Shown: piece after piece, positions 1 through 31,474 of the stretch
How positions within the stretch are numbered: the stretch's first letter is position 1
Layout of the letters: the number at the start of each line of letters is the position of its first letter
From: Amoeboradix gromovi X-113
Lineage: Eukaryota; Fungi; Sanchytriomycota
Direction: 5' to 3'
Length of the DNA stretch: 31,474 bases
NCBI GenBank assembly: GCA_018985225.1
Contig: JADGIF010000035.1
Coordinates: 1 to 31,474 of the forward strand
Notes under the pieces: model-generated
The model's database searches: none
What the model saw: the letters and a program-made list of their open reading frames with translations, nothing else
What the model was told of the DNA's origin: nothing
Translations under genes and position numbers: made by a program

Positions 1-389
1 GTAATGTTATACTAACATCATTACTCTTGTCAATTTCATTCTCACAGACACTACATTTCTTTGATTTACTGGTGTATGAAAGCTTTTGCTTTCTCTTGGC
101 CATAACTTTATTAGGAAAGGTCTCTATTTATGGGCAAGATTAAATGAAAATATACCCTATTATGAATTAGTATTATGATAAAGATTGGAGGAAAGAGTAA
201 GAGAATAGCTGCACAGAATATTTATTTTTGAAATTTCGATACAAAAAGTTACTTATTTTCCTTTTATATTCGTCAACTCCGCAACTAGCTGAATGCCCAC
301 TCGCCTCTTAAATCCATAAAATTAATAAAGCTGAAATAATCTTCCAAGTTGTTACAGAAAGTTAGTTCAGTTTTTATATTTGATGTCCC
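1..389 (-). mobile_element. TIR element copy E1 (Fanzor-derived, non-autonomous), truncated by the window start; left end only
   Basis: Ends ...GTTAGTTCAGTTTTTATATTTGATGTCCC at 389 and shares blocks with E3-E6. Minus strand 79->2 reads SYTSKSKKCSVCENEIDKSNDVSITL (TnpB/Fanzor YTSK plus first CxxC). Confidence 0.85.
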
Positions 390-603
390 TATTGGTAATC
401 TAGTGTAGTTTCTATGTCTTCTTCCTACCTAAAAATAAGGATGTTTTGTCAAAAAAACTATTTATTGTTCTTTAAAGCAGTTGTATCTGCATGTTGTAGG
501 CCAGTGTTTGCCAAGATCATCGAATTTAATGTATTTTGAACTTTCCTAGTAGAAACCATGTTTTAGACACATCAATCGAATTTTTGACACAACTGCTTAA
601 TTC

Positions 604-1383
604 ATGACTTTAGAGCAGTTTGGATTCAAGAGAACTCTAGTAGACGATGGCGATAATGCTGAAAAATCTAGTAAGATTCGAAAGATCGTTGGCAATTCAG
701 AAAACATTGACAAGGATCTGCATATTCCAGAATCTTGGAAACGTGAACTAAGTGATGAATTTGGTAAGGAGTACTTCAAAAGACTACAAAACAGTTTAGC
801 AGATGCTCGAAAAAAGAGTGTTGTTTACCCACCAGTTGATGAGGTTTTCAAGTTTATGAATTGCAAAATCAATGATATCAAGGTTGTTATTATTGGACAA
901 GATCCTTATCATGGCCAAAATCAGGCTTGCGGACTAGCCTTTAGTGTTAGCAAAGTTGTGAAAATACCGCCTTCCTTGAGAAATATTTACGACGAACTCA
1001 AAAACGATATTGCAGATTTTGAAATGCCATCTCATGGTGATCTTTCAGGTTGGGTTTCTGAAGGAGTATTCTTATTGAATGCGTCCTTAACCGTTACAAA
1101 GTCATCACCTAACTCTCACAAGGACTTTGGCTGGTATAAATTTACAGATGCGATAATCAAAAGGATTAGCCAGCATTGTGAAAATGTTGTATTTATGCTA
1201 TGGGGAAGTTTTGCGCAGCAAAAGGCATCAATCATCAACAGCAAGAAGCATCTTATACTGAAAGCAGCACATCCTTCACCATTTTCAGCACACAAGGGTT
1301 TTTTTGGATGCAAGCACTTTTCAAAAGCGAACAGCTATTTGTCTGAAAACAAGAAAAATCCCGTTAATTGGAGTTTGAAATAA
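604..1383 (+). CDS. UNG1: Uracil-DNA glycosylase (family 1)
   Basis: GQDPYH, PPSLRNI, GVFLLNASLTV and HPSP motifs; N-terminal PIP-like TLEQFGF. Confidence 0.97.
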   Translation: MTLEQFGFKRTLVDDGDNAEKSSKIRKIVGNSENIDKDLHIPESWKRELSDEFGKEYFKRLQNSLADARKKSVVYPPVDEVFKFMNCKINDIKVVIIGQDPYHGQNQACGLAFSVSKVVKIPPSLRNIYDELKNDIADFEMPSHGDLSGWVSEGVFLLNASLTVTKSSPNSHKDFGWYKFTDAIIKRISQHCENVVFMLWGSFAQQKASIINSKKHLILKAAHPSPFSAHKGFFGCKHFSKANSYLSENKKNPVNWSLK

Positions 1384-1598
1384 AAATGCGTAAATAAACA
1401 AATTAAATTTTTACTCTGCCGAATTATAAAACTACAGAAATACAGTTTTACAATGGAAAAAAATGTGACATAAGCTATGAAAGTCGACCGCGGGTAAAAG
1501 GAGTGCCGTCAAAAGAATTTATAACTGGTGAAAAGAGGACTAAATTCAAATTAGTAGAAAAGGATACGAGGAAACAGAAAATCAAGAAAGGATATTAA

Positions 1599-1929
1599 AT
1601 AACCGTATTTGTTGGGAAATGGTAGGAAAGCGCACTTTAAGGCTGTGCTCCAATTCCAAACATATTTTTTTGCCATAAATGCTCAAATGAGGACAAGGTA
1701 ATCATTGTACCTGAAGATTATACGTCCAAAATGTTATAATTCAAGAAGGGTGTGAATAGTAAAGAATTTGGAAAAAAAGAATTTCAGGAAATGTGAATCA
1801 TGCTTTTCAATTATTGATCTTGATCAGACTGCTAGTTTGAATATTAGAGATGTATTTATTAGTTATACGACATTCAAATAGCCAGAATGGCGAAATCTTC
1901 CTTTAGAAGACGATATCAATATACTATGA
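1599..1929 (+). pseudogene. Fanzor1-like (TnpB-family) nuclease relic, C-terminal RuvC/zinc-finger part
   Basis: ITVFVGKW*...GCAPIP...KVIIVPEDYTSKM (E at 1713), then FRKCESCFSIIDLDQTASLNIRDVF...*PEW (DLD at 1816-1824). Contains stops and a frameshift. Confidence 0.8.
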
Positions 1930-1981
1930 GTCAACTCTTCCCAATATGTAAACCAGGCAGCGAATGCTTTATAGTTTATGT

Positions 1982-2394
1982 GGGACACCAAACATAAAAA
2001 CTAGACCAAGTCGTCTTTAAAGTAGGTACTCCATAAGGAGGAAATACTATTATTAATAAAAGTTCTTCTTTCAAACCAATTTTCTTTCATTAATGCCATT
2101 CACCTGTTTCAAATATACGAGGTCTTTGAGTTTCTAAGAAAAAGATGCATTTTCTTAGATGATACTTTTTATCTGTTCCATTTTCTTCTTAACACCTTTT
2201 GTATAACTTAATTTTTGTTTTCTCTTCTTATTAATAATTGTTTCTAAGATTTTGATGGATGAAAAGTTTTACACTAAAATAAGTTACTTGGACTAGTCAG
2301 ATTAATTTAATTTAGTTTACTATCGGTTAATACAATTGAAATAATGATTCAAACTGTCTCAGAAAGTTAGTCTAGTTTCTATGTTTGATGTCCC
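1982..2394 (-). mobile_element. TIR element copy E2, complete (413 bp), diverged subfamily
   Basis: GGGACACCAAACATAAAAACTAGAC... to ...GTCTAGTTTCTATGTTTGATGTCCC. Minus strand reads YHLRKCIFFLETQRPRIFE and MKENWFERRTFINNSISSLWSTYFKDDLV*. Confidence 0.9.
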
Positions 2395-2426
2395 TTTTGT
2401 TTTAACGAGATTTTCCTATTCTTATT

Positions 2427-3380
2427 ATGTGTGTCCCAAAGTTGCAGACCAAAGTAGCCGGAATTGAGTTCTTTTCAGGTATAGGTGCATGGAAATATGG
2501 AATGCCTGATATAGATTTTGTTCCGTTTGATATCAATGAAAAGGCGAACTCAATTTATTTTGACAACCATGGCGTTAAACCTATAGTCAAGAATTTAGCA
2601 TCATTGAAATGCAAAGAGATACCAGACGCATTGATATGGTGCATGAGCCCACCTTGTCAGCCATTTACTCTACAGAAATCATCGAGATATAAAAAAAAAC
2701 ATGATTTTAGAAACGATGCTCTGATTAACCTCATTTCAATGATTTCATTGAAGTTGCCTAGAATAATAATACTTGAAAACGTTGCAAACTTCAAAAATAG
2801 TGACATTTGTGAATTATTCAAGAAAGCATTGAATAACAACCATTACAAATTTGATGAGGTCCTACTGTGTCCCACTCAGCTTGGAATTCCAAATAAAAGG
2901 AAAAGATACTTTCTCATCGCGATACTTGATCGAGAATTCTCATTTGTGCAACCAAAAAGTATTAAATGTAAGGATTTGTCTGAATATTTAGACGAACACG
3001 TTGATAAAGGTTTCTATATAGAGATTCCGATTCTTGAAAAGTACTTTAAAATAGCAGATATTGTAACATTTTGCGATCGTGACAGTAATTGTTTTACAAA
3101 GAACTACAACCGCATTATTGAGGGAAGTGGAAGCCTGATTCAGACCAAGCTTATAAATCTTACTCCAAGTGAAAGGATCGCGCAAGTACATCAAGTAGGA
3201 TTACGGAGGTTCACGCCACTGGAAATCGCTAGAATCTTTGGATTTCCAAGTGATGCTAAATGGAACGCTTTATTAAATGAACAATACAAGTTGCTGGGCA
3301 ACTCCATTAATGTAAATGTTGTCAAGTTTATATATGCTCAGTTAAAGCCTATCATAGACGACTTGAATTCTATAAAATAA
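2427..3380 (+). CDS. DNMT2: DNMT2/Pmt1 tRNA (cytosine-5) methyltransferase
   Basis: EFFSGIG, SPPCQPFT, LENV, DNMT2-diagnostic CFTKNY..EGSGS, LGNSINV. Confidence 0.93.
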   Translation: MCVPKLQTKVAGIEFFSGIGAWKYGMPDIDFVPFDINEKANSIYFDNHGVKPIVKNLASLKCKEIPDALIWCMSPPCQPFTLQKSSRYKKKHDFRNDALINLISMISLKLPRIIILENVANFKNSDICELFKKALNNNHYKFDEVLLCPTQLGIPNKRKRYFLIAILDREFSFVQPKSIKCKDLSEYLDEHVDKGFYIEIPILEKYFKIADIVTFCDRDSNCFTKNYNRIIEGSGSLIQTKLINLTPSERIAQVHQVGLRRFTPLEIARIFGFPSDAKWNALLNEQYKLLGNSINVNVVKFIYAQLKPIIDDLNSIK

Positions 3381-3892
3381 GCATTAACTGGCATGACCAC
3401 ACGTTCTTTGCTGTAAATTATTCGGCATACGGGTCTTCGCATGCCTTGACCAATCGTAAGTAATAAAAAATTGAATTCCCTTGTAATGCATCAAGTCTAT
3501 ATAAAATTGTCAACGTGCTAATATTTTGTTTCTCAAGCAGACCATACAATCATGAACTCTTGTGCCAGTTGTTCTTCTCATTTGTGCAAAGTAGAACTGG
3601 CAGATATTTTGGGAATGCTTAAACAAATACTCAGGTCTTTAGTAGCGCTACAGTTTACACAATTATGTAGCTGAAGACGTACTCTAGATGTAATGCCCTT
3701 GTTTATAGTCTTTCAAGCTTCACGAGTTTTGTCATGTTAGTGGACGTGTTACCGTTCTAAGGAAGTCATTTCGACCCAATATTCTTGTCCGAGGGGCCTT
3801 CTTCTTTGAAGTAAACTAGTTTCTGTTCAAATTGAACGGTTAATAAAAACATGTTCTTGTAATTCATAGATCAAGTCTCCTTTGTTTACTTT

Positions 3893-4729
3893 ATGTTCCA
3901 GCTCGAATGCAAGCTGATAAATCCTTTAATTTATTGTTTAAGCAAACTAAGTAATGAGATTTCTTGCGAAATAACTGATGATGGCTGCACATTCTCAGCC
4001 TGTGATGAAGGTAGGACTGTCTATGCTGTTTGCAACATATCATCTAACATACTTGTTGTCATCAATGATATACCTGTTAAGTCTTTCACAGTTAATTCGA
4101 TGTCATTCTATCAAGTTATCCAACACTTTGATTGCATGTTTCTAGAAATTGATGTGGATTTTATAAATTTTAAAAATATGGCAAAAGATACGGTTTTTAG
4201 TTTACCTCAAATACAGGCTGAAAAGTTACACTTAGAATACAGAAAACTAAATCTTTCTGGGTATGCTAAGATACTACCACACCTGAATTGGAGTTTGTTG
4301 TTAAACTCGCCATTTCTTCACGTAAAAACCACTGAAGATGAAATACTGCTAAGTACCACACTAGATTCTATGGAAACCAAAATAACTATTAACCCTCATG
4401 ATTGCGATGCATTCGAGTCTACTAATTTAAGCTGTATTGTTCCAATGCATATAATTACTCAAATCATGCAACTTGGGAGCATTACAAAGAAACCAGTGTC
4501 ATGGTATTACCAAAGCCAAAACCCAATGGTGCTGTCATTGGATGTGAATGATTTGTTTGATTTTGACGTAGTAGTTTCAATCAGTGAACAAGACATAGAA
4601 ACGGTAACACAAAGAGGATCTTCGGGTGACTACGCTAATAGTACAACTAATGAATCTGCAGAGGTAGAGAGGTTATCCAATACTGCAGCAGTCGGGCCTC
4701 GACCTTTGAAGAGGATTAAATACCAATAA
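3893..4729 (+). CDS. RAD9: 9-1-1 checkpoint clamp subunit, Rad9/Ddc1-like
   Basis: N-terminus YCLSKLSNEISCEITDDGCTFSACDEGRTVYA resembles the Rad9 N-terminus; PCNA-like length with an S/T-rich tail. Confidence 0.65.
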   Translation: MFQLECKLINPLIYCLSKLSNEISCEITDDGCTFSACDEGRTVYAVCNISSNILVVINDIPVKSFTVNSMSFYQVIQHFDCMFLEIDVDFINFKNMAKDTVFSLPQIQAEKLHLEYRKLNLSGYAKILPHLNWSLLLNSPFLHVKTTEDEILLSTTLDSMETKITINPHDCDAFESTNLSCIVPMHIITQIMQLGSITKKPVSWYYQSQNPMVLSLDVNDLFDFDVVVSISEQDIETVTQRGSSGDYANSTTNESAEVERLSNTAAVGPRPLKRIKYQ

Positions 4730-4873
4730 ATAATTTTTATTTGCAGCTCGATTGTTTTCTTGAATAAATTGATTATTGAGAATTTGTATGGATTTTTGTA
4801 TCATTTCAAGACTTTTCTAATAGCTTAAATACTCGATATTCTTCCTATTCGCAAATGTTAAATGGAATAAATA

Positions 4874-5240
4874 GATGTAATCCTGAATATTTCAAATCTA
4901 AAGAAATAACTAGCAGGTAGAGCATGCATTCATCAATGCTGAGGAACTTGTCCAAGGATGGAAGAATTAGATGTCTTTCAATGCCTATAAGAGATAACCT
5001 GTACAATTTATTCAAGGAACGCTTGAAGTTCAAGTGTAAACAAAGAGGAAAGACGATAATCGAATGTAATGAAGCATTTACTAGCCAGACATGTACAAGG
5101 TGGGGTACTCCAAAAAACCAACCTGCTAGTTGCTCTGTGGAAATTCTCGATTTTCTCGGATATCAGGACTTTTAACGAGGAGAAACGCTTAAATTCGCAG
5201 TTTCCTGGAGGATCAAGAGTTTCAGCAGAAACACCTACGA
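4874..5240 (+). pseudogene. Fanzor2-like (TnpB-family) nuclease relic
   Basis: YNLFKERLKFKCKQRGKTIIECNEAFTSQTCTRWG (E at 5071) matches the F.RL..K...E.YTS.TC..CG block. Decayed DVIL/FKSKEI lies upstream and SRNTY downstream. Confidence 0.8.
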
Positions 5241-5361
5241 CGCTGCTCCCTCCGCTGCGATACTAACTGACATCATTGAAAATCTGAGGCGGGAGCCTTG
5301 GAGACATCTGTTTTAAAAAGTTTGTCTTGTTCTTGTAGTGTCTCTCAAAGGACCCCTTGAA

Positions 5362-5823
5362 ATGTCTCATCGTAAAGTCACTGATGATAAGATCAACAAA
5401 GCTTTAGATGCTCAAGTGGATTCAGGTGACGAGGATGAATTAGAGTCGCAAAATGTAATTAATCAGCAGGAAATTCTTTCTAAATCCGCGATTATCAAGC
5501 AAGAAATTCAATCTTACTTAAATCGTGGGTGCCCAGAAGATGCGATGAAGTCTGCTTGTAAGGACTCTTCAAAACATGTTATCGAAGCTCTTATCCCAAT
5601 TTTTAATGATATTGTAGGCTCCGGTAAATTATCCACTGACAAATTTGTTTCTTCATTAACCACTAATGAATTGGACGTTTGTATGAAGTACATTTATAAA
5701 AGTATGGAATCCTTAACAAAAGGCTTACCCGTAAACATATCCAATGTTCTTTTGTTTCATGAAAAGGTGGTTAACCAGGCTGGTGTTGGTAGCATTGTTC
5801 GTGTTATAGCCGACACACAGTAA
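5362..5823 (+). CDS. ARC15: Arp2/3 complex subunit 5 (ARPC5)
   Basis: DVCMKYIYKSM and LLFHEKVVNQAGVGSIVRVIAD; ATG at 5362 preferred to the GTG start in the track. Confidence 0.9.
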   Translation: MSHRKVTDDKINKALDAQVDSGDEDELESQNVINQQEILSKSAIIKQEIQSYLNRGCPEDAMKSACKDSSKHVIEALIPIFNDIVGSGKLSTDKFVSSLTTNELDVCMKYIYKSMESLTKGLPVNISNVLLFHEKVVNQAGVGSIVRVIADTQ

Positions 5824-5848
5824 TAAATCTTAAATTCAGTGTATTTAT

Positions 5849-8800
5849 TTAGTCTTCTTCTTCTTGCCTAAAACTGCTGCTACTCGACTTGTTATCTTCT
5901 TTTTCGGCCTTCAGTAATCCTTCAAACTCAATCCTCTTTTCATTTGCAAGTGCTTCTAAATAATTCGCATCTTCATATACCAATGACCCTTCCACGTTGA
6001 ATGACCTTGCGTTATCAAACATCATCTTGAAATCTATTAGCATTTCGGCCAAGTCACCATACTTTCCATTTTCTAATTTGTTCTGTATTTCATTCAAAGA
6101 TATTGGACTCTTTATTTGCACATAATAGCTTGGATAGTCTACCTTTGACGGTAACTTTAAGAACAAGTATGCACGCTGTCTATCGTATCCCTCGCTGGTA
6201 TCTAAATCGCTGACAATCGCATCAATTAAATCGATTCCATATGGCAATAAAGTCTTTGGTTTCTTATAAATGCTCCTACTTTGCGAAGCTTGTCTTTTAT
6301 TAGTTGTGCCATTACTGTTGTCAATCATTCCTTCTACATACTCATCTTCAGTCATAGTGTCATCATAATTTATCAGCTGCTTCTTTCTGGTTGCGTTCGG
6401 ATCATCTTTTCGAGCCAAATCTAACGGATTAAACTCAGATTTGTACACTTGTGGTAGTTCATTCAAAGTGTACAGTCTACCAGGCATTTCACCAGGCCTA
6501 CCATAAGAAGCCCATTCGATGTTGTCATTGGTTACTCTATCTTTGTCCATCTTATGAAATACATGCAGCTCGTGCTCATTTCTAGCTAGCAATTCATTAA
6601 GTTCCTCATCGCTTACTTCTAAACTTTCTTGTCTAATCTCAGCATCAACGGTGCTAGTTAATAGAGACTTAAGAAACTGCTCACGCTCCATATCTGTTGA
6701 TTTGTTGTCAAACTTACCAGCCTGTATAATCTTGCCATCCATATCTAATTTGAACTGCGCGCGTTCTAATATTTTTTCTTCTACGCTATTGCTGGTAATC
6801 AATCTGAATATTCTAACTTCCGACTTTTGACCTATGCGATGCGCTCTGTCCTGTGCTTGCAGGTCCTATATTAAATAAAAATACTTGATGAGGATTCCAG
6901 TCGCTATCAAATATAACAACAGTATCTGCTGATTGCAAATTCAGCCCCAAACCACCAGCACGCGTGGAGAGTATAAAGAGCTGATAAGGGCTGTCCAACT
7001 GATTAAACAATCTTAATAGCTCTCCGCGATCTTCTGATTTAGTAGATCCATCTAATCTCAAATATTTAAAACCTCTGTACAGACAGAAGTCTTCCATAAT
7101 TGTCATGACACTAGTCATCTGAAAAAACATCAATACCCTGTGCTTTGTGTTAAAAAGCTTGGGTAGCATACGATCTAATAATTCAAATTTACCACTAGTT
7201 CTGAATAAAACATCATTCGAGGTATGTGACGGATTGATCGTATTCTCGATTTCACTGAACACAAATGGGTGATTGCATATCTTGCGCAGCTGCATGATTG
7301 TATTGTTTAATCCTTTTATTCCAGTAAAAGATTTCTGATTGCTTGCATCTTTAACAGTAAACAAACAGTTGTGAATTCGCATTTGCTCATAAAGCTTGGC
7401 TTGCAATGCGCTGAATGGCGTTTTAATGATTCGCTCTATTTTATCTGGCAATTCCGACTCAACATCCTTCTTTAATCTACGTAGTAAAAATGGGCGAAGC
7501 ACCTTATGAAGCCTTTTAATAATCAGCAGTGATTCTTCTTCGCTTAGCTCAATGTTACTTACTCCGAAAGGGGCACTAAACCATTCATCAAAACTACGAT
7601 CGCTGTTAAATATTTTAGGAAGAATGAAATTTAATATGCTCCACAACTCTTGCAGATTGTTTTGTAGAGGAGTACCGGTTAATATTAATCGAAATCTACT
7701 AGAATATTGAGTGTTAAGAACAAGGGATAACTTGCTATTAGAGTTTTTCATTCGATGCCCTTCATCAATGATAGTGTAAAGCCATTTGACGGGCTTCAAG
7801 ATGTGCTTGTCCTTGATGATATATTCAAAAGTTGTTAAAACAACTACAAATTGACGCTGCTTAATATGAAACTGCATCTGCTTTCTCATTTGAGGACTCC
7901 CTTTATAAGCAAGTATGCTAATAGATGGAGACCATTTTTGGAATTCGTTTGACCAATTGCTCAGTGTGCTCAAAGGTACTACAATGAGATATGGTCCCAT
8001 TTGTTGCTTGACACTTATCAGATATGATATCAGGGCAATGGATTGAATAGTCTTCCCAAGGCCCATTTCATCAGCCAGTATACCGTTTAATCGGTTATTA
8101 TACAAACTTACCATCCATTCCAGTCCCTTGACCTGATAATCTTTTAATGTGCCGCCAATAAGATTGTTAGGCTGCATGACATGCTCTTTCACATAATGTG
8201 CAGTGTCATAGTAATCCTGATCTGGAATATCTTCTTCATTATCAGATTCCATGGTTTTGGTTATCAAGTTCTTTTGAACCTTCATTTTTGAAATTAGTTC
8301 GCCAATAAAGGTATTCGTTTGCTTCAGTAACTTGGAAATTCTGTTGTCTTTGGTTTTGCTAACTAGCAGTAGATACTCTTGTTCATTGTTTTGTTTAAGA
8401 GCATTCAAACGCTGCTGTTTTATAGCTTGCTGTTGCTCTTTGTTAATTTTGATTAGATTGGTGTGTTGATTCAATATATGCTTGTGCAGTTTGAGCTTCC
8501 CTGTGTCTACTAAAATAGATTGGCCATGCTGAAGTATTGAGTTTAGATACTGCTTTTGGACTTGTTTTTGTTGAAACTCAATGGATTGTTCGTACTGCTG
8601 ATGATATTCAAGCACCTGTTGTATTGAGTGATTGACCGGTATATGTTGTGTATAGTCGATATAGTCAACAAGTAGCGGATCAACACCAGTGTCATATTTA
8701 AAATATGGTATGGCACTATCTTGAATTGTATAGCTGAGATTATTCTGGTAGAGAATAAATCGAACTAATGCATTGCTTTGATCCATCAGATGATAGTCAT

Positions 8801-8852
8801 TAGGAAAATGCTTGTCTAAGTAAAAGAATGCTTGAGTATTACTGGAAGCCAT
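5849..8852 (-). CDS. SNF2: SWI/SNF-RSC ATPase with bromodomain; 2 exons (8852-6885, 6865-5849), 994 aa
   Basis: [14 protein letters not shown] and C-terminal bromodomain. Removing 6866-6884 restores DSDWNPHQ|[13 protein letters not shown] and joins the two ORFs in frame. Confidence 0.95.
6866..6884 (-). other. 19-nt spliceosomal intron in SNF2
   Basis: GTATTTTTATTTAATATAG; removal restores the invariant helicase motif VI region. Confidence 0.95.
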
Positions 8853-9264
8853 AGATTACGAGACAAAGTTACACATGGAGAACGAAAATATAATTGAAAA
8901 TTTCGGTGCCAATGCTACTCGTTAAAAGTTCTGATTTTCTAGAAAATCAAGGACGCGCTCAGAGAAGTGACAAAGACGTTGCAATCGATGAAAAGAAAGT
9001 ATAACAAGTTGCTAAGCAAGCATCAAAATGTATACCCAGTTTCTCTTTGAAATCGAGAAGCTAGGAACAGAATTATTGTACAGCATGCGCAAATCAATTC
9101 CATGGACATATTTCAGTCTATCCCCGGAAACACGGGATACAGTTAATAACACAAGACTCTTAGATAAATAAATAAGCATGAGAGTCTTTTTTAGTCCAGC
9201 AGTTTATTAATATGTAGTGCCTTCAGTAGCATTCAAAATCTGCTTCATAAATCATTCTTAATTT

Positions 9265-9639
9265 GGGACACCAAATATAAAAACTAGACTAACTCGTTTT
9301 TAAAGGAGGTGCACCATAGGGAGGAAATGCTATCATTAATAAAAGATCTTCTATTATACCAATTTTCTTTCATTACTTTCAATCCCCTCTTCAAAATAAA
9401 ACTAGAAGACCCTGCATCTCGTTCTCTTGGCCATAACTTTATTAGTAAAGGTCTCTATTTATGTGCAAGACAGTTCTTTCTGGATAGTTCTTAAATGAAA
9501 ATATACCCTATTATGAATACTCGTCAACTCCGCAACTAGCTGAATGTCCACTCGCCTCTTAAACCCATAAAATTAATAAAGCTGAAATAATGTTCAAGTT
9601 GCTACAGAAAGTTAGTCCAGTTTTTATATTTGATGTCTC
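9265..9639 (-). mobile_element. TIR element copy E3, complete (375 bp)
   Basis: 30-bp TIRs. Minus strand 9424->9284 is an open frame ERDAGSSSFILKRGLKVMKENWYNRRSFINDSISSLWCTSFKNELV* ending inside the TIR. Confidence 0.92.
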
Positions 9640-9645
9640 AACTGT

Positions 9646-10530: not shown

Positions 10531-10755
10531 AATATTACCCCTAACAGGAGGGATCAATAAAAGAGACTCAAGTCTTTTACGGAACAAAATCAACAAGAGA
10601 GACTAACTTACCGATTCAAATAACTAAATTAGACCTAGCCAAGTTGAAATGTCCCATATTTGACATCTCAATCTACTTCTGATATGCGCTGCTTTGGTTT
10701 TGCTCACTTGGTAGACTTTTCAACGAACCTAGTGACAAGAAGCGAGCTCATTTAA

Positions 10756-12285
10756 CTACGCAAATTTATTATGATAGGGATGCAGAGTTTCTTTAGAATA
10801 TCCATCTACCTTGATCATTTTTCTATGTTTATGCATCTTTGCAACTAAATGAAAATCAGACATGTTAATCATCTTTATATTCGAAGTGCTACCTAATGCT
10901 TTTGTTTCCTTCTTCATAGATACAGTAACAGGCGTTATTTTGGTCTCTCGGCTTCCTTTATCACTACCAAGAGTAACGTTCTCTGACTTATCCAAAATCT
11001 GCGAAGACACTTCTATTTTCTGTTTTTTTAAAGTCTGCGGTTCCATAGCCATATCTTCTTTTTCGACTAAGACTTTCTCTCTCTCCATTTGCCTTTTTCT
11101 TTGTAATCTTTTCTGAATCTCCTCTTGGGATATTCCAAACGTTTGAGTTAGGCTTGAAGTCTCACCAGGTTTGTGCAGTTTAAGCGACTCATTGAACGCT
11201 TTTTGCGTATCCATGAATGATCTGTTTATTTGCGGGTGTACTTGAGAGTACTGAAGCGTATTTTTTACGTTATCAATTTCAGGTAAGTCTAGTATTGGTA
11301 GGCTGGGTTCAAATTCATGTATCTGATTATAGGACTGCGTCTGTATTTCAGATGTTTGATCGCACGCTTTTGTTTTATTACTAGATTGTTGCATGAAGAA
11401 ACTTAGAAAATCAGTTCCCGCCTGGTATGTAGGTTCGGATACTAATTCAGTTCGTGGGGTTGGATCGATAGCACTCTCAAAGCCACCATTGATGATCCTA
11501 AGGTATAATTCATCAAATGTTATTACTGCTGAAGTGCATATATCATTCGATATAGGTAGAATAGTTTTATTTGGATATCTACATTCAAATGATTTGAAAT
11601 CATAGATAGAATCTTCGGATTCATGTAGCTTCACGTCAAATTGTTTGGCTAAAGTACTTAGTATTCTCAAATCCATATCACTTAACGAAACGGCAAGAAA
11701 GACGAATTCTGCTAAATTGGCTTTGTGGATGTCTATATCGGGGTATATAACTGCCTTTTCAATCAGCTCCTCTAGAATATTACTTTCTCTACCACTAGTA
11801 AAGTCCTTTAAATTGAATGCTTCTTTAGACATGTCCTGTATGATATTTCTAAGTTTTACAATATCTAATACGGGCTTGGAGACTTTTATACCAAGTAACA
11901 GCATAAGATCATACTTATGTTTTGTTATATATTTAGATTCTTCAATTGACGTGGATACCCAATTCCATTGGTCATAAATGGATTCGCCAAAGTACTCTGG
12001 ATTGTATATTTTGATTCTGAAGTACGCCAGCTTATTGAAGCACAGTTTATCACCATCAACAACTTTGCAGTGCTTTCTGCGTGGTTTATCATTTAATAAG
12101 CACGATTTCATAGAGACATGACCACCATCTTCTCGGTATTCTATTGAAATTTCATTTTCTAAGCCAATTTGCGATTTGGAAGACATTTTGCCAGAATTTA
12201 GGATTCCTTTTTTAAGCAATAAAGTCTCATTCTTTCTCATAAAAAAGCACATGTTAAATTCTTCATAACCAACAAGAAACAGCAT
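10756..12285 (-). CDS. Divergent protein, possibly Nbs1/Xrs2-like (FHA-BRCT)
   Basis: 509-aa ORF. A globular N-half and an SQ/TQ-rich disordered C-half loosely match nibrin architecture; identity is weak. Confidence 0.4.
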   Translation of the reverse strand: MLFLVGYEEFNMCFFMRKNETLLLKKGILNSGKMSSKSQIGLENEISIEYREDGGHVSMKSCLLNDKPRRKHCKVVDGDKLCFNKLAYFRIKIYNPEYFGESIYDQWNWVSTSIEESKYITKHKYDLMLLLGIKVSKPVLDIVKLRNIIQDMSKEAFNLKDFTSGRESNILEELIEKAVIYPDIDIHKANLAEFVFLAVSLSDMDLRILSTLAKQFDVKLHESEDSIYDFKSFECRYPNKTILPISNDICTSAVITFDELYLRIINGGFESAIDPTPRTELVSEPTYQAGTDFLSFFMQQSSNKTKACDQTSEIQTQSYNQIHEFEPSLPILDLPEIDNVKNTLQYSQVHPQINRSFMDTQKAFNESLKLHKPGETSSLTQTFGISQEEIQKRLQRKRQMEREKVLVEKEDMAMEPQTLKKQKIEVSSQILDKSENVTLGSDKGSRETKITPVTVSMKKETKALGSTSNIKMINMSDFHLVAKMHKHRKMIKVDGYSKETLHPYHNKFA

Positions 12286-12355
12286 TGTGACAAGGACCCC
12301 AATGTTTAGCAGAATTTAAAATAAGATAGTTTTCATGCTATAATTGTTTATTAGT

Positions 12356-16449: not shown

Positions 16450-16670
16450 CAGAGCTAAGAGGTCACCAGGCGATATAGGTGACATTCTGATATGGCGGAA
16501 AGGTAAAATCATCTTCCAAAGAAAGAGGAAGATGTTGGTGGAATGCAAAGAGGTACTTACTCGTCTAACGTGCACAAGGTGTGCAGCTTGAATAAATGCA
16601 ATTTGGACACATAAAAACATACATGTACAAGCTCCAATTTTCCAGTAGATAGAATCCAGAACGTGTAATA
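16450..16670 (+). pseudogene. Second Fanzor2-like relic
   Basis: KMLVECKEVLTRLTCTRCA, then in a shifted frame HTCTSSNFPVDRIQN. 16521-16585 aligns by eye at nucleotide level with 5041-5105. Confidence 0.7.
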
Positions 16671-17742: not shown

Positions 17743-17824
17743 CCTTTCGGCCAAAGTGGAGTATCTCAAAATTTACTAGTTACATGGACTCTGAAAGCAA
17801 TGAGAGATAAAACTATAAATAAAT

Positions 17825-20378: not shown

Positions 20379-20500
20379 TCTCTCCTCAGTAAAGTCTGGT
20401 TTGTAAGAAAATCAAGAGTTATCATGGAGAGTATGACGAGTTATTAATATAACTATAGAAGGCAATCAATCAGGGTAGAGTTTGTGTAATCACTATAAAT

Positions 20501-20961
20501 GGGACACCAAATATAAAAACTAGACTAACTGGTTTTTAGAGAAGGTGCACCATACTGAGGAAATGCTATCATTAATAAAAGATCTTCTATTGTACCAATT
20601 TTCTTTCATTGCTTTCAATCCCCTCTACAAAATAAAACTAGAAGACCCTGCATCTCGTTCAAATATATGAGGTCTTTGAGCATCTAAGCAAAAGGTGCAT
20701 TTTCTTAGACGGTACTCTTTTCTAGAGTCATTTTGTAATGTTATACTAACATCATTACTCTTATCTATTCTAGTTTCTACAGAGTAATAGTGATATTTTA
20801 TTTGAAATAAAGATTGGATGAAAGAGTAAGAGAATAGCTGTACAGAATATTTATTTTCCTTTTATACTCGTCAACTCCGCAACTAGCTGAATGTCCACTC
20901 GCCTCTTAAATAATGTTCCAAGTTGTTACTGAAAGTTAGTCCAGTTTATATTTGATGTCCC
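20501..20961 (-). mobile_element. TIR element copy E4, complete (461 bp)
   Basis: TIRs at both ends, the left one with a small deletion. Minus strand reads SNDVSITLQNDSRKEYRLRKCTFCLDAQRPHIFERDAGSSSFIL (CTFC 20688-20699, ERD 20652-20660). Confidence 0.92.
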
Positions 20962-21134
20962 ATATGTAATAAACTGAACTAAAATCCATTACTTTAGCAT
21001 CTGCTTGTGTAGCGAATGATATGGAATAAATCGTTATTGCTAACTTTATGAGATCGATTGTAGCAATTGCTCTTTCTAGCATTTGTATACGATATTCAAA
21101 ATGCCTTGATCTTGGGATTTATAAAAAGCTTTAT

Positions 21135-24100: not shown

Positions 24101-25140
24101 TTTTTATGTTTCTTCTTGATTTGCTCATGTACTAAATCAGCAAATTTATCGCTAATCTTCAAAACATGAGGACCGCCTTTAAAAGTATTTATATTATTTA
24201 CAAATGAACAGTGTTGAAACTGACCATTACTAGGAATGATTGCAACTTCCCAATTAGGTTGAATATCAAACAAAACAGTGGGAGGTACCTCAGAATCGTT
24301 TTCTAATTGAATTGCTTCGGAGTATAAAGAACAATAATCCTTGAAGTTTTTGATAGGTATTTTGTTACCGTTTAAATAAACGTTGATTGACTTGACAGTT
24401 CCAGCTAGATCAAAAGCCCTTTTAGTCATCAAACCCACAATATCTTCATCAAGTAGTTTCATGTTGAATTTATCAAGATCAGGATAGAACGTAACACAGG
24501 TATAGTCCTTTGATTTGCAGGGAGTGATAACAGGAGTATTAATAACACTCATGTTAGAATCGAAAACCTGAACGTATTTTTTTGATTTTTTGGAATCAAC
24601 AGTTTCGACAATAAATTTTGAACTAAACACGTTGCATAATTTAGCGCCATATCCATTTCTACCACCTGTAGTTTTCTTTTTAGAGTCATCGAAATTACTA
24701 CTAGTTAATAAATGCCCAAAGATTAACTCAGGAACCCAGACTTTCTCTATTGAATGTTTCTCGATAGGAATACCCTGACCATCGTTCTTGACGCTAACTC
24801 TGTTCTCTTTAACGTTAATTTCGACTCTGATTTCCTTCATATTTTTGTCTCGCTGAGCATTGTCCGCGGCATTAACTAAAATTTCATCGAATATTTTATA
24901 CAAACCAGGAACAAATGATATGGTCTTTTTTGTCATCTTGTTGTTGTTGTCTACTATCCACATTTCCTGTGTCGCTTTCTCTATTGAACCAATGTATGTA
25001 TCTGGACGTAATAAAATATGTTCTAATTGTGTCTTTTTTTGATAAATATGCTCAACAGATCTATCAGATGCAGTCTTATCGACCTTTAAAAAGCTTATTT
25101 GGCTTTCTTCATCAAAATCTGAAGTTTCTGTAGATGACAT
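21135..25140 (-). CDS. TOP2: DNA topoisomerase II; 2 exons (25140-21546, 21526-21135), 1328 aa
   Basis: EHILLRPDTYIGS, GGRNGYGAK, EGDSA, PLRGK and ASARY; the charged CTD ORF joins in frame through a 19-nt intron. Confidence 0.97.
21527..21545 (-). other. 19-nt intron in TOP2
   Basis: GTAACAGAAACTAACTTAG with a CTAAC branch motif; splicing gives ..EQR LSKSPEP.. in frame. Confidence 0.9.
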
Positions 25141-25312
25141 TGTTAGAACCCCCGAATTTGCAAAATTAAATCACAAAAACATCCAAGAGAAAAACTGGAA
25201 TAACTAAAAATTTCAACATTCCCAATACGAGTATCTTTCCTTGCAAAATTTTACTTCAATAATAACAACTAGATCAAGTATTTGAAAATAGGACTTATTG
25301 ATAAATCCATCT

Positions 25313-25794
25313 GGGACATCAAATATAAAAACTGGACTAACTTTCTGTAACAACTTTGAACATTACTTCAGCTTTATTAATTCTATGGATTTAAGAGGCG
25401 AGTGGATATTCAGCTAGTTGCGGAGTTGACGAGTATAAAAGGAAAATAAATATTCTGTACAACTATTCTCTTACCCTTTCATCCAATCTTTATCTCAAAT
25501 AAAATATCACTATTACACTGTAAAAACTAGAATAGATAAGAGTAATGATGTCAGTATAACATTAAATGACTCTAGAAAAGAGTACCGTCTAAGAAAATGC
25601 ACCTTTTGCTTAGATGCTCAAAAGACCTCATATATTTGAACGAGATGCAGGGTCTTCTACTTTTATTTTGAAAAGAGGAATACAATCAATGAAAGAAAAT
25701 TGGTATAATAGAAAATCTTTTATTAATGATAGTATCTCCTCTGTATGGAGCACCTTTAAATACGAGTTAGTCTAGTTTTTATATTTGGTGTCCC
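25313..25794 (+). mobile_element. TIR element copy E5, complete (482 bp), opposite orientation to E1-E4
   Basis: GGGACATCAAATATAAAAACTGGACTAACT ... AGTTAGTCTAGTTTTTATATTTGGTGTCCC; colinear with E4. Confidence 0.92.
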
Positions 25795-25938
25795 AGATAA
25801 TACCATCTGCTAAAAGCATTCTAGCCATTTGGCGTAATAGAGAAGACCTAAATATCCTGCATTTGCTCAATTAAAACCTCTAGCAAGAATCACTACTGAA
25901 GCAATAAAATCTATGTAGTCACGGTAGATATCATTTAT

Positions 25939-27561
25939 TTAGTATGGTATTGAGCACTTCTTCCTATACATCCCACGCCCTAATCTTCCAGCGTGTCTAA
26001 TATACCGACCACTTCTCCTTGCGTGTCCTCTTCCTCTTGTAAATCTTTCAGCTCTTCCTCTCAAAAGTCGACGACCTCGAATACTTCTTCCAGATTCAAG
26101 CCTGCTCTCGATAGCGGTAAATTGTTTTACACCAATGTCCTTTCTTCTATCCTTATGCTCTGCTCTTAGCTTAGCGACATCATTACTTTCATTTTCTGGT
26201 AGTGTAACGTTGAGTAAGTGATACTTTCCATAGTTACTCTCATTTACATTTTGTGCTTCCAAATCTAAAACGGAACTTACTGAATCCTTGCTTAATAATT
26301 GTAACTTTTTATGTTTCAGCTCAACAAGATGTTCAGGGTGTATCTTCAACAAAGAAGCAACCAAAAATCCAACTTGGAAACCCTTTTCATAGCTTGGCGT
26401 ATCATATATAGAATATCTATTATTTTCAGTAATGTTTGAATAACTTGAAGAAAAATCAGCAGAAAGGTCCAGCATTTCGATTTCTTGATTATTAAAACAA
26501 GGCGATATATCAGGGAAGGCCAGGTTAGCGTCAGCTTGCAAGGATTTCTGGAATTTGTATATTGAACTTACATCAATGCTTGAGGATTGACCCATACTGA
26601 AAGGAATGAGCTTCAATGCCATGTCCCTATTAAAATAGTCAAACTCTTTGGGTGGGTGATTGATATAGTAGTGCTGTAATGGATTAAACAATGGAAAATC
26701 TGATTTGTTTTGATTTAATTCGAATTTAGTCATATTATAAGGCAGCTTTATAGCATACAAAGATGACAAATCTTTGTTGAAGCTAAAGTCGTACGATTTA
26801 CAGGACACGCGAACGTGTTTAAATGGGTTTCTAATTCCCAGCTGCACTTGTAATCCAAACAACTTGGGCAAATGATTGCCTTGAGTAACATTGAGCACTT
26901 TTGTGTAAAAAGGCTTTATGTCAACAATATTAAAATAATTCAGATCTTTGCACCATCTATACAAATTGTCTGGTAATTCAAGATAAAGTGCATTGTACAA
27001 GCAAGCAATTTCAGTTATCCCATTAAAACAATATATATTAACATTATTGTTGCTCAATTTGCAAAGCACACTAGAGAACAAGAACTGGATGCCTTGATGA
27101 TTTACTTGGTACTGGCCAGGGATGTATCGCAGGCCATATAACGCATGTATATTAAAATCCATACCAGTCTTTTGTAAGTACTCGCGGTTCTTAGCATTTA
27201 GGGTGACACGCTCGCCAGGATATATTCTGAAGTAGTAGTTGCTACATATGTAGCCTTTTTCAGTTTTGGACCAGAAACTGACACTCCAAGACCAAATACA
27301 GCCATAAGTGGAGATATACTTGAGGGTATTATATTTGTCGTCAAGCTTAGGGGCATGTAACTTACCAGGAGTACCCATGGTGCTATAATCTGACTTCATA
27401 ACACAGTAATCACATTCATTCGCATCTTGATTAACTTTTGCAACAATGTCATCATTAAAGTTTCTTGAATCTACGACTGTTACATCAGGTCTATCAAATC
27501 CATGGAGTCTTGTAATTTTTAAATGGAACTGAGAATCATTCGGTCTAGAAATAGCCAACAT
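25939..27561 (-). CDS. CAF1-family (TOE1/PARN-like) ribonuclease homologue with degenerate active site
   Basis: YLQKTGMDFN..YGLRY and YCFNGITEIACLYNALYLELPDNL...IVDIK match the family blocks; Arg-rich tail. ATG at 27561. Confidence 0.7.
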   Translation of the reverse strand: MLAISRPNDSQFHLKITRLHGFDRPDVTVVDSRNFNDDIVAKVNQDANECDYCVMKSDYSTMGTPGKLHAPKLDDKYNTLKYISTYGCIWSWSVSFWSKTEKGYICSNYYFRIYPGERVTLNAKNREYLQKTGMDFNIHALYGLRYIPGQYQVNHQGIQFLFSSVLCKLSNNNVNIYCFNGITEIACLYNALYLELPDNLYRWCKDLNYFNIVDIKPFYTKVLNVTQGNHLPKLFGLQVQLGIRNPFKHVRVSCKSYDFSFNKDLSSLYAIKLPYNMTKFELNQNKSDFPLFNPLQHYYINHPPKEFDYFNRDMALKLIPFSMGQSSSIDVSSIYKFQKSLQADANLAFPDISPCFNNQEIEMLDLSADFSSSYSNITENNRYSIYDTPSYEKGFQVGFLVASLLKIHPEHLVELKHKKLQLLSKDSVSSVLDLEAQNVNESNYGKYHLLNVTLPENESNDVAKLRAEHKDRRKDIGVKQFTAIESRLESGRSIRGRRLLRGRAERFTRGRGHARRSGRYIRHAGRLGRGMYRKKCSIPY

Positions 27562-27822
27562 ACAATAAAGTTGTTTCAAAAAATAAACAACGCAATAGCA
27601 GCCTCTACACACTTAAAGATCGTACATATCTTTAGACAACGCTGTGAGGAATTAAATTCTTACAATTTCGTACCAGAATGGAATAAGGAATTTCCATTTT
27701 TCTAGTACCGATTTTAAGTAATTCATAATCTAATTCTTGAAATGAAGTGCTCTAAGAAGAAATTATGAGCCGTTTATTCTCAAAACGGATTGCAAAGCAA
27801 TTATCCCTTCGTTTCATATTTA

Positions 27823-28730
27823 ATGGTTGAGAAGAAATCCATAAATTGGACAAACCTGGCGGTTGGTGGGTTTATTCAAATTTTAGAGGTGTCCACTCTT
27901 GGTCAACCGTTCGAGGTTCTGAAGACACATATGGCTGCCCAGCGTGGAGATAACTTAAGGGCAGCAATTCGTAAAACTTACCAACGAGGCGGTATATTTG
28001 GATATTGGCAGGGATTGGTTCCTTGGGCCTGGATAGAGGCAGGAACGAAAGGTGCAGTATTAATGTTTACAAGCTATGAGGTTGAGCACATTTTAAAGAA
28101 TTTTGGGGTTTCGAGCACTCTAGCAGCTGTCTCTGGAGGTGCTATCGGTGGAGTGGCACAAGCTTACACTACCATGGGATTTTGTACATTTATGAAGACT
28201 GTTGAGGTTACTCGCCTTAAGGATGGTAGGGGAACATTAGAAGTTGCTGCTTCCGTTTGGAAAGCAGAGGGCTGGAAAGGAATGAACAAGGGTGTAAGTG
28301 CAGTAGCTCTACGCCAAATGACCAACTGGGGTAGCAGATTTGGTATCTCAAGATTTGTGGAATCGCTCATGAAAGGTAGTTCTGATAGAAAGCTTTCAAG
28401 ATCTGAAAAGGTATTATCCAGCGCCATAGGTGGCGCTTTAGCTTGCTGGAATCAGCCGTTTGAAGTCATTAGAGTAGAAATGCAGAGTCAGCTGAAAGAT
28501 AAATCTCAAAAAAACTTTGGGTTCATCGACACAGCCAAGTTTATTTATTCAAGAAACGGAATTTCAGGATTTTATCGTGGTGTGACACCTAGGGTATGTC
28601 TTGGTGTATATTTGACAATTTGCATGGTATCATTTAATTTATCTAGGTGTTTGGTGGTGATGAAGCCAAGGCAGCAGTAGCAAAATGGCAAAAAGACAAA
28701 AAGTTGAAGCAATCAAGTAAAGATATTTAA
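27823..28730 (+). CDS. YHM2: Mitochondrial citrate/oxoglutarate carrier; 2 exons (27823-28626, 28647-28730), 295 aa
   Basis: TLGQPFEVLKT, PWAWIEAGTKGAVL, TMGFCTFMKTVE and RQMTNWGSRFG; the spliced end CM|VFGGDEAK matches the Yhm2 C-terminus. Confidence 0.93.
28627..28646 (+). other. 20-nt intron in YHM2
   Basis: GTATCATTTAATTTATCTAG; restores the conserved MVxxGDxAK. Confidence 0.88.
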
Positions 28731-30153
28731 TAAAACTATCCCGAATACGTACTGGAATGTAATTAAGTTTCCATTAGACACTTCTTTGACCGCAATCTCT
28801 TGTTCCAATTTTGGAATGACTGATTTGTTAGTCTTGACATCAAACACGGGTTGTTCTGTTATATTACCAGTATACATTTTTAGATAGTTCAATTGGCTTT
28901 CAATATATCTTGCGTGTTCAGGCACCATTCCTAATTTTTTATAATCTTCATCAGTGACATTATTGTTGATCACAGTAAAAGAAGAGTTATCAAAGTAATC
29001 TCCGATGTATTTCACAGCAGAATCCCACTTAGCCTCGCTTTTTTGGTCTGAAGAGTAAATGAGATGTAAACCCTGAAAAACGTCCAAATCTATATCTACC
29101 TCAATTTTCTCAATGCTATCCACTAAATCAATTTCGCTCTCAAACTCGGTTTCTGTAGCCATTGGTTCTTCTTCCATCTCATTAATCTCAATAGAAGGCA
29201 TTTCTGCTATCTCCAGTTCAATCTTTTGATCTATGTCACCAGACCCTATGGTGACATTTCTGGATTTCTCAGACTCTTCCTCTCTTTTGTATATAATATT
29301 AGATTTGACAATCTTCTTCTTAAACCTGTTAGGAAAGGATCCCTCGTATTTAACACAGTTGTATTTCATTGTAATAACGTCCACGATTTTATTGTTTAAT
29401 ATAGGCAATGGTGCGTTCTTCCACCAGGGGGTAAAACTTTCTGCTGTCCACATGTTATGGACATATTGATATTGTGATAAAGCCTATATTAGGATAAATT
29501 ACATAATCAGAAAAGGTGTGGTGAACATAAAATGCAAAATCATTATTACTATAGGAAACGCCCATATCCCCTCCCAAATGCATATGAAACAGAGCATGAG
29601 GCCCATTTTCTAATAGTTTCCCAAAATATTCGACTCCATTTGGAGTAGCTACAATATTGGCTATGACACCCCCACCAGAAGGAAGTATATCTCTTCTCAG
29701 CCTTCTGGATATGCAATGCCTGAATGGGTAATTAACAATATTGTAATCAAAAGGACCTCCCTTGACGCATCTATCTGGTCCAACGGAACCGAGGTAATAG
29801 TCGGAAAAAATCTCAGTTTTATCAAAATTCCACTTAAGCTTATCGGCGTCCTTGGCCCAGTTCCAATAAGGTAGTGTCACATTAGCATCTATCTTTCTCA
29901 TCTCTGTCTCAAAATTATATATAAACTGTCTATGCCATGGCATAAAGTAAACGTTGTTATGAAATCTGCTAAAAAATGAGTGATGAATTTCTGCAAATCT
30001 TCTGAACACCCCATTTTTCTTCAACTGGTTAACAACTCTCTTAACAGTAGACCATTCTTGCTTGCTTAGCTCTCTGATCTCTTTCCTAATTCTTGGGTTA
30101 TTGCAGCCTACCTTAAATTGTGCAAAAATGAGAGCGATCATCAAAAGTAACAT
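28713..30153 (-). CDS. Secreted tyrosinase-family di-copper protein; 2 exons (30153-29503, 29483-28713), 473 aa
   Basis: Signal-like N-terminus, IRKEIREL, CuA H..FH..FMPWHR, LPYWNW, CuB PHALFH..GGDM..FYVHH; hydrophobic C-terminus. Confidence 0.9.
29484..29502 (-). other. 19-nt intron in the tyrosinase gene
   Basis: GTAATTTATCCTAATATAG; joins HHTFSDY|ALSQYQYVHNMW in frame with the downstream ORF. Confidence 0.9.
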
Positions 30154-30239
30154 TTACGTTTCGCAAAACCCCATAGTTGAACTAACGGGTATACCCAATT
30201 AGAGGGACTTTTTGAGGAGAGCAACTTTGTTACCAAGTA

Positions 30240-31325
30240 ATGATCACAAAGATCTCACTCATATCTGATAAAGGGTTAATGGATCTAACCAAGCAGTATC
30301 TCTTTGAAAAACAACTGGTGGCAATACCAACAGAAACTGTATATGGTTTAGCAGCGAAATTAGAAGTTGAAGCGATCTCTAAAATATTTGAAGTAAAAAA
30401 AAGACCAATGGATAATCCATTGATAGTGCATATTTATGATAGAACAGAATTAACTTGTCTAGTTACTGAGATTACTGAAACTCAGACCCTTCTTATGGAC
30501 AGATTCTGGCCAGGTCCTCTAACACTTTTATTTAATGTTAAGAAAGCAGTGCCAAAGATAATTACAGCTGGGTTAGACACAATAGCAATTCGTTGTCCTG
30601 CGCATCCAGTTACTCGAGAGATTCTAAAGAACTGCGGCCCACTAGCTGCCCCTAGTGCAAACTTAAGCGGGAAACCATCTCCGACTACAGCGCAGCATGT
30701 GTTTACTGATCTCGAGGGCAAAATACCGCTTATTATTGATGGAGGACCGTGCTCTGTCGGCCTAGAGTCGAGCGTCTGTAATCCGTTAACAGATCCACCA
30801 TGTCTCTTAAGACCAGGTGTAATCACACTTTCCCAATTACGGCAGATAAAAGGAATGGAAAATTGTGTATCTAAATTCGAGGGCAAGATGGCTATGGCCC
30901 CTGGGATGAAATACAAACATTACGAACCCACAATACCTGTGATACTAGTGGTAGCTGACTTTATAGATTATTCTGTTCTTAAAAATGTTGCACAACCTTT
31001 TGCGATAATTAGAGATGCCACTCTTCCTATTACGAATGATGAATTACATTATCAGTGCATTAAGGGCTGTATTGCTGATATTTCGCAAACATTTGAACTT
31101 TCTAAATCAGACTCGGTTCAGTATTTAAATCAGCCGATTGCGGGAAATGTGGAGATATCTATAAGCGATATGAGAAGTAGTTTATTTCAATTTTTGCGTA
31201 TACTTGATGGTGAAAATAACTTTCCTAAAAAGGCATGTATTGTTGCATATTTGAGGCCTGAAAACAATGAAGACTTGTACAACAGACTCTCTAAAGCATC
31301 CAGTTTAATTTTGATTGCATGCTAA
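30240..31325 (+). CDS. SUA5: Threonylcarbamoyl-AMP synthase
   Basis: PTETVYGL, KKRPMDNPLIVH, FWPGPLT, APSANLSGKPSPT and APGMKYKHY. Confidence 0.96.
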   Translation: MITKISLISDKGLMDLTKQYLFEKQLVAIPTETVYGLAAKLEVEAISKIFEVKKRPMDNPLIVHIYDRTELTCLVTEITETQTLLMDRFWPGPLTLLFNVKKAVPKIITAGLDTIAIRCPAHPVTREILKNCGPLAAPSANLSGKPSPTTAQHVFTDLEGKIPLIIDGGPCSVGLESSVCNPLTDPPCLLRPGVITLSQLRQIKGMENCVSKFEGKMAMAPGMKYKHYEPTIPVILVVADFIDYSVLKNVAQPFAIIRDATLPITNDELHYQCIKGCIADISQTFELSKSDSVQYLNQPIAGNVEISISDMRSSLFQFLRILDGENNFPKKACIVAYLRPENNEDLYNRLSKASSLILIAC

Positions 31326-31343
31326 TTTCAATCATCAACAAAT

Positions 31344-31474
31344 GAGACATCAAATATAAAAACTGGACTAACTTTCTATAACAACTTGGAACATTATTTC
31401 AGCTTTATTAATATTATGGATTTAAGAGACGAGTGGACATTCAGCTAGTTGTGCGGAGTTGACGAGTATAAAAG
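31344..31474 (+). mobile_element. TIR element copy E6, left end, truncated by the window end
   Basis: GAGACATCAAATATAAAAACTGGACTAACT followed by the conserved left-end block. Confidence 0.9.

Follow-up and report, generated by a model that had tools for sequence, protein, structure and literature searches.

Among the described elements that carry a gene for the RNA-guided nuclease Fanzor1, SPu-1 of Spizellomyces punctatus, which encodes SpuFz1 (PMC3627910, PMC10432273), is the best structural match to the repeat family analyzed here, of which six copies are present in contig JADGIF010000035.1 of Amoeboradix gromovi X-113 (31,474 bp; this whole stretch is called the window). SPu-1 resembles the family as an element of about 2.1 kb with a single Fanzor1 open reading frame (ORF), 30-bp terminal inverted repeats (TIRs), no transposase of its own, ghosts of about 500 nt and a CA dinucleotide outside the left TIR only. 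For the SpuFz1 loci it was shown that this one-sided CA is part of the measured target-adjacent motif (TAM) CATA (PMC10432273). However, SpuFz1 shows only 13% identity in a structural alignment, the target site duplication (TSD) of SPu-1 is TA instead of the 4-bp ANNT found here, its right end comprises 75–80 nt of non-coding sequence whereas the stop codon lies inside the TIR in A. gromovi, and SPu-1 has 42 + 134 loci in 24 Mb, while the 10.5 Mb searched here hold at least 558 copies. The best profile match is GtFz1 of Guillardia theta (PDB 9CER; PMC11423790), for which an overlap of the omegaRNA with the C-terminal codons is described (17 aa in GtFz1) as it is predicted here, although identity is 17%, the third catalytic residue is Asn and not the Asp of an ERDxxS motif, and the TAM is TTAA compared with a predicted CANNN. 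The Sola2-Fanzor1 elements DFa-1/2/3 and PPa-1/4/5 of Dictyostelium and Polysphondylium (PMC3627910) share 4-bp AT-rich TSDs and a mobilizer of the Sola type, which is probable for the A. gromovi family, but these elements are 10–15 kb long, occur in 2–12 copies, have TIRs of 12–22 bp with another sequence and contain the transposase, and their Fanzors are intron-rich with 1000–1800 aa, whereas an intronless protein of about 600–640 aa, an element of about 2 kb and a transposase acting in trans are expected here. Finally, the Fanzor1 elements of SfAV (PMC10711439), likened here by description, are compact Fanzor1-only TIR elements for which TIR and TSD are predicted as guide scaffold; they differ in their insect-virus hosts and in having two copies. 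Each feature taken singly, i.e., the type of system, the ghost loci, the one-sided CA, the ORF overlap and the Sola partner, is already known. The literature searched described neither this clade nor its host or copy number; no listed paper combined Fanzor with Amoeboradix or Sanchytrium, and the accessible part of the supplements of two Fanzor surveys does not name Amoeboradix or Sanchytrium.

Compared with these systems, the repeats of the window are very probably ghosts, i.e., non-autonomous derivatives of an element of about 2 kb whose only gene encodes a Fanzor1, as judged from sequence comparison and a structural model. A non-autonomous Fanzor1-type family had been the core of the original prediction, and the likeness to the S. 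punctatus ghost loci that it proposed holds closely. Re-examination of the window confirmed six copies with 30-bp TIRs and differing internal deletions, all of them intergenic with host genes on either side, the gene sense being on the minus strand in E1–E4 and on the plus strand in E5 and E6:

1–389, minus strand: E1, cut by the contig start; left flank C-AATA
360–389, minus strand: left TIR of E1, followed by the 5' region
65–76, minus strand: deletion junction of E1 with a 12-nt filler at TCAAAGAA microhomology
1–64, minus strand: zinc-finger-coding remnant of E1 (SKKCSVC)
1982–2394, minus strand: E2, older and divergent subfamily, about 80% identical to the other copies; both TIRs; flanks AAAA / ACAT
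9265–9639, minus strand: E3, both TIRs; about 140–160 nt of the right end kept, including the RuvC-III ERD codons; flanks AGTT / AAAT
9264–9316, minus strand: terminal hairpin of E3, candidate core of an omegaRNA scaffold, closed by the first flank base A
20501–20961, minus strand: E4, both TIRs; commonest ghost type, in which about 190 nt remain at the left and about 270 nt at the right; flanks ATAT / ATTT
20520–20762, minus strand: Fanzor C-terminal remnant of E4 with the second CxxC, the ERD motif and one internal stop; final stop codon (20520–20522) inside the right TIR
25313–25794, plus strand: E5, TIRs at 25313–25342 and 25765–25794; remnant with a single frameshift; flanks ATCT / AGAT
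31344–31474, plus strand: E6, left end only, cut by the contig end; left flank C-AAAT

The copies are 69–95% alike piecewise, with BLAST E-values down to 0 within the window, and left and right TIRs differ at 2 positions (93% identity), so that the ends can be counted separately. Both junctions of E5 were recovered in independent contigs; no contig spans E5. The peptide pieces from which the Fanzor was originally recognized are present in E1, E4 and E3, and no ORF of at least 80 aa covers them. They had been read as YTSK-CxxC-CxxC-xRD, but the 'LSYTSK' of E1 consists of 5'-region DNA plus the 12-nt junction filler, to which most of YTSK belongs; the YTSK match is partly coincidental and only SKKCSVC is derived from the motif. 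The E4 remnant matches the full-length homologue P0003 (tblastn, E 3e-8), and both the DPG and the RuvC-II Glu are missing from the window copies. Beyond the original prediction, the analysis resulted in a 4-bp TSD, a one-sided flank motif, a terminal hairpin, a candidate transposase and a second, unrelated Fanzor2 family in the window.

The RuvC-II Glu, which had been reported as not retained, is absent from the short window copies but survives in long copies elsewhere in the genome (10,549,678 bases in 1,319 contigs were searched). A copy at the end of locus L060 retains it ahead of the zinc finger, and a search with L060 resulted in 20 longer pieces. In L081 (contig C1157) a 436-aa frame is open from the start of the contig up to a stop located 27 nt before the element end, including SDG, D125 (DPG), E340, C347/C350, C379/C382 and D394 (ERD). 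The spacing E340-x6-C347 follows the Fanzor fingerprint (Yoon et al., 2023) and recurs in L060 and L072–L077; L077, of the young subfamily, has Glu and ERD in one frame. The RuvC-I DPG is also present in L074 and in the homologues P0003, P0006 and P0007, and the SDG/TDG motif of the WED domain in the same three homologues. DPG and the shifted Glu were described as Fanzor fingerprints, and TDG marks Fanzor1 (PMC10711439). L074 (C33) is a TIR-to-TIR copy of 1,660 bp with an exact AAAT TSD, in which the gene is broken and partly deleted; the window copies are 81–95% identical to its ends, the young ones 94–95%. The divergence at the three codon positions between L081 and L074, which represent different subfamilies (0.32/0.18/0.48), indicates past selection on the family protein. 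A profile of the L081 protein, built from its homologues, matches GtFz1 with E 4e-17 and aligns the ERD to its third catalytic position. In a Foldseek search with an AlphaFold model, ranks 1–7 were taken by SpuFz1, GtFz1 and PpFz1 at 13–17% identity, and a Fanzor2 followed at rank 35.

A DDE transposase ending in a Cys-rich tail had been considered in advance as the only product of long copies. The 78-aa remnant piece of the window has no Pfam match and a single-sequence phmmer search of the PDB with L081 was blank, as this explanation would allow, GtFz1 being reached by the profile only; however, what the long copies encode is a Fanzor with the RuvC D-E-D order, a DDE transposase being absent from them. 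Together with the GtFz1 profile match and the Fanzor folds, this refutes the explanation. A Fanzor2 taken up by a TIR element, or a contaminating bacterial TnpB, is likewise very improbable as the source of the gene. The genome does contain an abundant IS607-type Fanzor2 family (family B) and the assembly apparently derives from amplified single-cell DNA, but the SDG/TDG motif and top matches to Fanzor1 only, the position of copies between eukaryotic housekeeping genes and the occurrence of family B sequences beside and not within the repeat argue against such an origin. Moreover, the family has TIRs and TSDs, both of which are lacking in IS607 Fanzor2 elements, and the resolvase belongs to family B (L040).

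Some points weigh against a Fanzor1 parent element. The structural model is of limited quality (pLDDT 66.5, first 110 residues poor, TM 0.3–0.4), and no full-length intact gene of the family was found in this assembly, the D-E-D frame, which the original prediction had proposed to look for, being cut by the contig start. However, N-terminal and middle pieces of the gene lie mostly at contig ends (C1157, C746, C322 and C346 end inside the gene), as is expected if longer repeats were collapsed, and the absence of an intact gene is therefore not shown. In favor of the Fanzor identity, PF07282 was matched with E 4e-4 and 4e-5, which is below the cut-off.

Such an intact gene is present in a homologous element. 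Homologues are rare: a search of 5.8 billion representatives yielded 4, and one of 1.84 billion protein representatives 16. From another sample, L096 is a complete element of 2,071 bp consisting of the left TIR, the 642-aa protein P0007 and a stop inside the right TIR, without a transposase. Its right TIR is identical at 29/30 positions to that of the window, and P0007 and the L081 protein share 31% identity. The element lies directly behind a divergent histone H3-like gene (1–147 of L096) and is flanked by AAAC / CAAA, which is no clean duplication. The same kind of right end was found in L094 (64% identity) and L097, with flanks ATGA and AATT, respectively, and in L095 a GGGACA left end follows AC-ATTA. 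The ends of L094–L097 thus show that GRGACA-ended TIR elements carry this Fanzor1 clade in several genomes. The motif ERDxxS(A) is shared by P0001, P0003, P0006, P0007 and P0013. The ERDxxSSxFI of the window, originally noted as unusual, does differ from the NRD form, but since distant homologues share ERDxxS, this motif marks the clade, keeps the catalytic Asp and is not a sign of decay; the third catalytic site is variable among Fanzors, as shown by the Asn of GtFz1 (PMC11423790).

P0003 (616 aa, 38% identity) is encoded on a gene-dense, virus-like contig (L091–L093, with AAA_25, dCMP deaminase and U-box), where a GAGACA-type end with flank ATGT follows its stop. Within A. gromovi, L079, L082–L085 and L087 form a sister subfamily of ghosts; these are about 990 bp long, have a variant TIR and retain N- and C-terminal remnants of the same Fanzor. 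L002, L011, L021, L023, L050, L058 and L086 have further GRGACA-ended termini with other inner sequence, which suggests that one type of transposase serves a broader group of elements.

The copy number is high. Exact 25-mer TIR ends were found 355 times for the left and 558 times for the right end, with 0 matches of the reversed-pattern control; the family is therefore not a product of chance. Exact right ends give a floor of at least 558 copies, and the finding that 30/40 sampled right ends are exact extrapolates roughly to about 750 copies or more. A total of 1,163 TIR matches was not used as a copy number since left and right TIRs are mixed in it (2 differing positions), and 1,373 first-look candidates of a DNA search include halves split at contig ends. 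The frequency of about one copy per 5 kb given before applies to the window (1 per 5.2 kb), but the genome-wide floor is 1 per 19 kb and the density is thus local.

Among 40 paired copies, a sample in which E5-like copies are overrepresented, the majority retain about 190 nt at the left and 270 nt at the right end, and the middle 1.2 kb of L074 is covered by none. These copies map to both ends of L074, i.e., TIRs and right end are kept and the ORF is largely deleted, as in SPu-1-type ghosts. The last 55–60 nt of the right end fold as a hairpin with interruptions. Its 3' arm is formed by the TIR, and the pair that closes it includes the first flank base, an A in 52/53 ends. For E3 the folding z-score is −3.97 (0/200 shuffles reach it), the same hairpin is found at the right ends of E2, E4 and E5, and z-scores range from −2.7 to −5.2 in 5/10 ends. 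TIR and TSD were described as parts of the guide scaffold for Fanzor1 (PMC10711439). By analogy to SpuFz1 and GtFz1 we favor the idea that the right end encodes an omegaRNA, in which the hairpin would act as scaffold closed by the first TSD base and the flank as guide. On the other side, several right ends fold no better than shuffles, a 167-column consensus has no covariation term, and although 86–90% of cells pair, the 3 both-side changes are reached by 18–33/500 shuffles and are suggestive but not significant; furthermore, a search of RNA runs found none containing this DNA. An Rfam search with the right end gave no match.

These points would also fit functionally inert MITEs (miniature transposable elements with inverted repeats), the ends of which serve only the transposase, the hairpin being a subterminal DNA binding site and the CA an orientation bias of the transposase. 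This reading is a serious possibility that nevertheless falls well short of even chances. The stops and frameshifts in the remnants, the intact gene not found in this assembly and the weak covariation are in line with it. However, the hairpin is found again in L094 (z −4.8) and, with another 5' arm and with G-U pairs, in the 31%-identical homologue L096 (z −3.5), the near-invariant A at position +1 pairs in the stem, and the ghost scaffolds of SpuFz1 are functional (PMC10432273).

The flanks of the copies reveal the target site. A TSD of 4 bp is exact in 11/39 copies compared with 3.0 in shuffled pairs (P 5e-5), with 3 exact matches at a length of 3 and 0 at a length of 5. The left flanks read A-C-A-W-W-T (C in 43/46, A in 45/46), C-A being present in all six window copies, and genome-wide C-A flanks 331/355 left ends (93%) compared with 182/558 right ends (33%) in mirror position (Fisher P 5e-82). 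This shows insertion at (A)C^ANNT with a 4-bp duplication and in a fixed orientation. By analogy to SpuFz1, a TAM 5'-(A)CANNN is predicted. The mirror motif at 33% of right flanks exceeds the roughly 12% expected from composition and would reflect a CA..TG preference of the transposase itself, which is again in favor of inert MITEs.

Exact TSDs in only 28% of copies count against this picture of the insertion. Copy interiors deviate by 3.7% from the majority, from which about 29/39 exact TSDs are expected and 11 are seen, and the 46 TSD mismatches lie between the expectations for ageing (12) and shuffling (67). Ageing was rejected as cause, as 35/46 mismatches are transversions compared with 42% in the interior and the left-flank C and A stay above 90%. 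About 60% of the copies thus combine flanks that stem from separate insertions. For the unmatched TSDs, the simpler explanation would be that amplified short-read data were misassembled across a 480-bp repeat, and the alternative would be recombination between copies. Statistics compiled for each end separately are not affected by these mismatches. Composite transposition among the six window copies was rejected, as no pair of outer ends shares a TSD. L005 and L023 have an identical 12-nt right flank and different left flanks, and L068 shows a 6-bp duplication beginning at the same C^A position.

Regarding mobilization, the AT-rich 4-bp TSDs point to Sola, whose elements generate 4-bp TSDs (PMC10741241, PMC3627910). 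The domain DUF7869 has 29 matches in the genome, in frames of up to 687 aa (including C556:18982, C915:1938 and C367:9293). In C488, a gene of the family stops at 8071 and resumes near 12246, and a DUF7869 match (11139–11675) lies inside this 4.2-kb gap; the insert has the ends GGGACAC..ACTAGAC, a related TIR (21/30), followed by AATT. From the coordinates we infer a nested insertion and not a composite element. It is probable that the mobilizer acts in trans and is a Sola-like DDD transposase with related GRGACA ends, for which DUF7869 is the candidate. DUF7869 is presumably the core of Sola-type transposases; no paper naming it was found. A mobilizer from a different DDE family (Zator, piggyBac-like or IS630/Tc1-Mariner, the last proposed for SPu-1) would be compatible with a DUF7869 link consisting of one locus by coordinates and a 21/30 TIR match, and with a transposase search confined to DUF7869. 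It is unlikely, however, as the 4-bp TSD is neither TA nor TTAA, the flanks reading ANNT instead of the TA duplicated by Tc1/Mariner-IS630, the 4-bp TSDs are those of Sola, and the C488 insert carries GGGACAC..ACTAGAC ends with an ANNT flank.

For the combined action of nuclease and Sola-like mobilizer a mechanism can be proposed. The ghosts would move in trans by cut-and-paste through the Sola-like transposase, and the right end, comprising the last codons and the TIR, would be transcribed through the flank as omegaRNA. A Fanzor supplied in trans would then cut the vacated site, recognized by the 5'-CANNN TAM plus guide, and repair from the sister or homologous chromosome would restore the copy, holding the ghosts in place while Fanzor is expressed. 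That Fanzor cuts the emptied site and repair restores the copy is a tentative proposal, to which we assign slightly less than an even chance. A working or recently working circuit, in which Fanzor cutting retains only copies with a CA-TAM, thereby producing the one-sided motif, and in which breaks or hybrid-end transposition recombine neighboring ghosts, leaving about 60% of copies with flanks of different insertion sites, at a density that reshapes the genome, is rather doubtful; if true, it would provide several hundred natural guide/TAM pairs for testing the native role of Fanzor.

The family represents a divergent Fanzor1 branch (13–17% identity to solved Fanzor1s) that keeps nearly the same right end at 31% protein identity. 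Its copies outnumber the S. punctatus family severalfold, in a genome of less than half the size that is reduced, parasite-like and also holds an abundant Fanzor2 family. A candidate transposase acting in trans is available, which SPu-1 lacks. A package for tests is at hand in P0007/L096, which is an intact member of 642 aa with both ends, together with the predicted scaffold and the TAM that 355 insertions predict. Hundreds of oriented insertions make the possible native role of Fanzor, retention of the element after excision, accessible to statistical testing.

The IS607-type Fanzor2 family B, which is unrelated to the TIR family, has left three remnants in the window:

4744–5182, plus strand: Fanzor2 remnant
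8913–8966, minus strand: Fanzor2 remnant
16517–16583, plus strand: weak Fanzor2 remnant

An 83-aa ORF at 4924–5172 matches PF07282 with E 1.6e-8. Genome-wide, 560 PF07282 candidates were rejected as copies of the TIR family and belong to family B. In L040 (C542:57-3245) a resolvase (PF00239) overlaps an open Fanzor2 frame of 590 aa with DPG, shifted Glu and DRD; this IS607 Fanzor2 locus is apparently intact and, though related to the family B remnants, has diverged from them. In L085 a family B end abuts the truncated right TIR of a 990-bp ghost. A third Fanzor remnant, Fanzor1-like with the usual WNRD..AA.NI ending, is present on the plus strand of L054 around 700–1150.

The window is a gene-dense eukaryotic contig of 36% GC, in which frames for a uracil-DNA glycosylase, a Dnmt2-like protein, SNF2, thymidylate synthase, topoisomerase II and a Sua5-like protein were recognized by motif reading. 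The ORF of the Dnmt2-like methyltransferase (2427–3380) begins 32 nt from the left end of E2. Similarly, a 557-aa ORF on the minus strand (25939–27612), located 144 nt from the right end of E5, has an N-terminal match to CAF1 ribonuclease (E 5e-11) and an Arg/Gly-rich tail.

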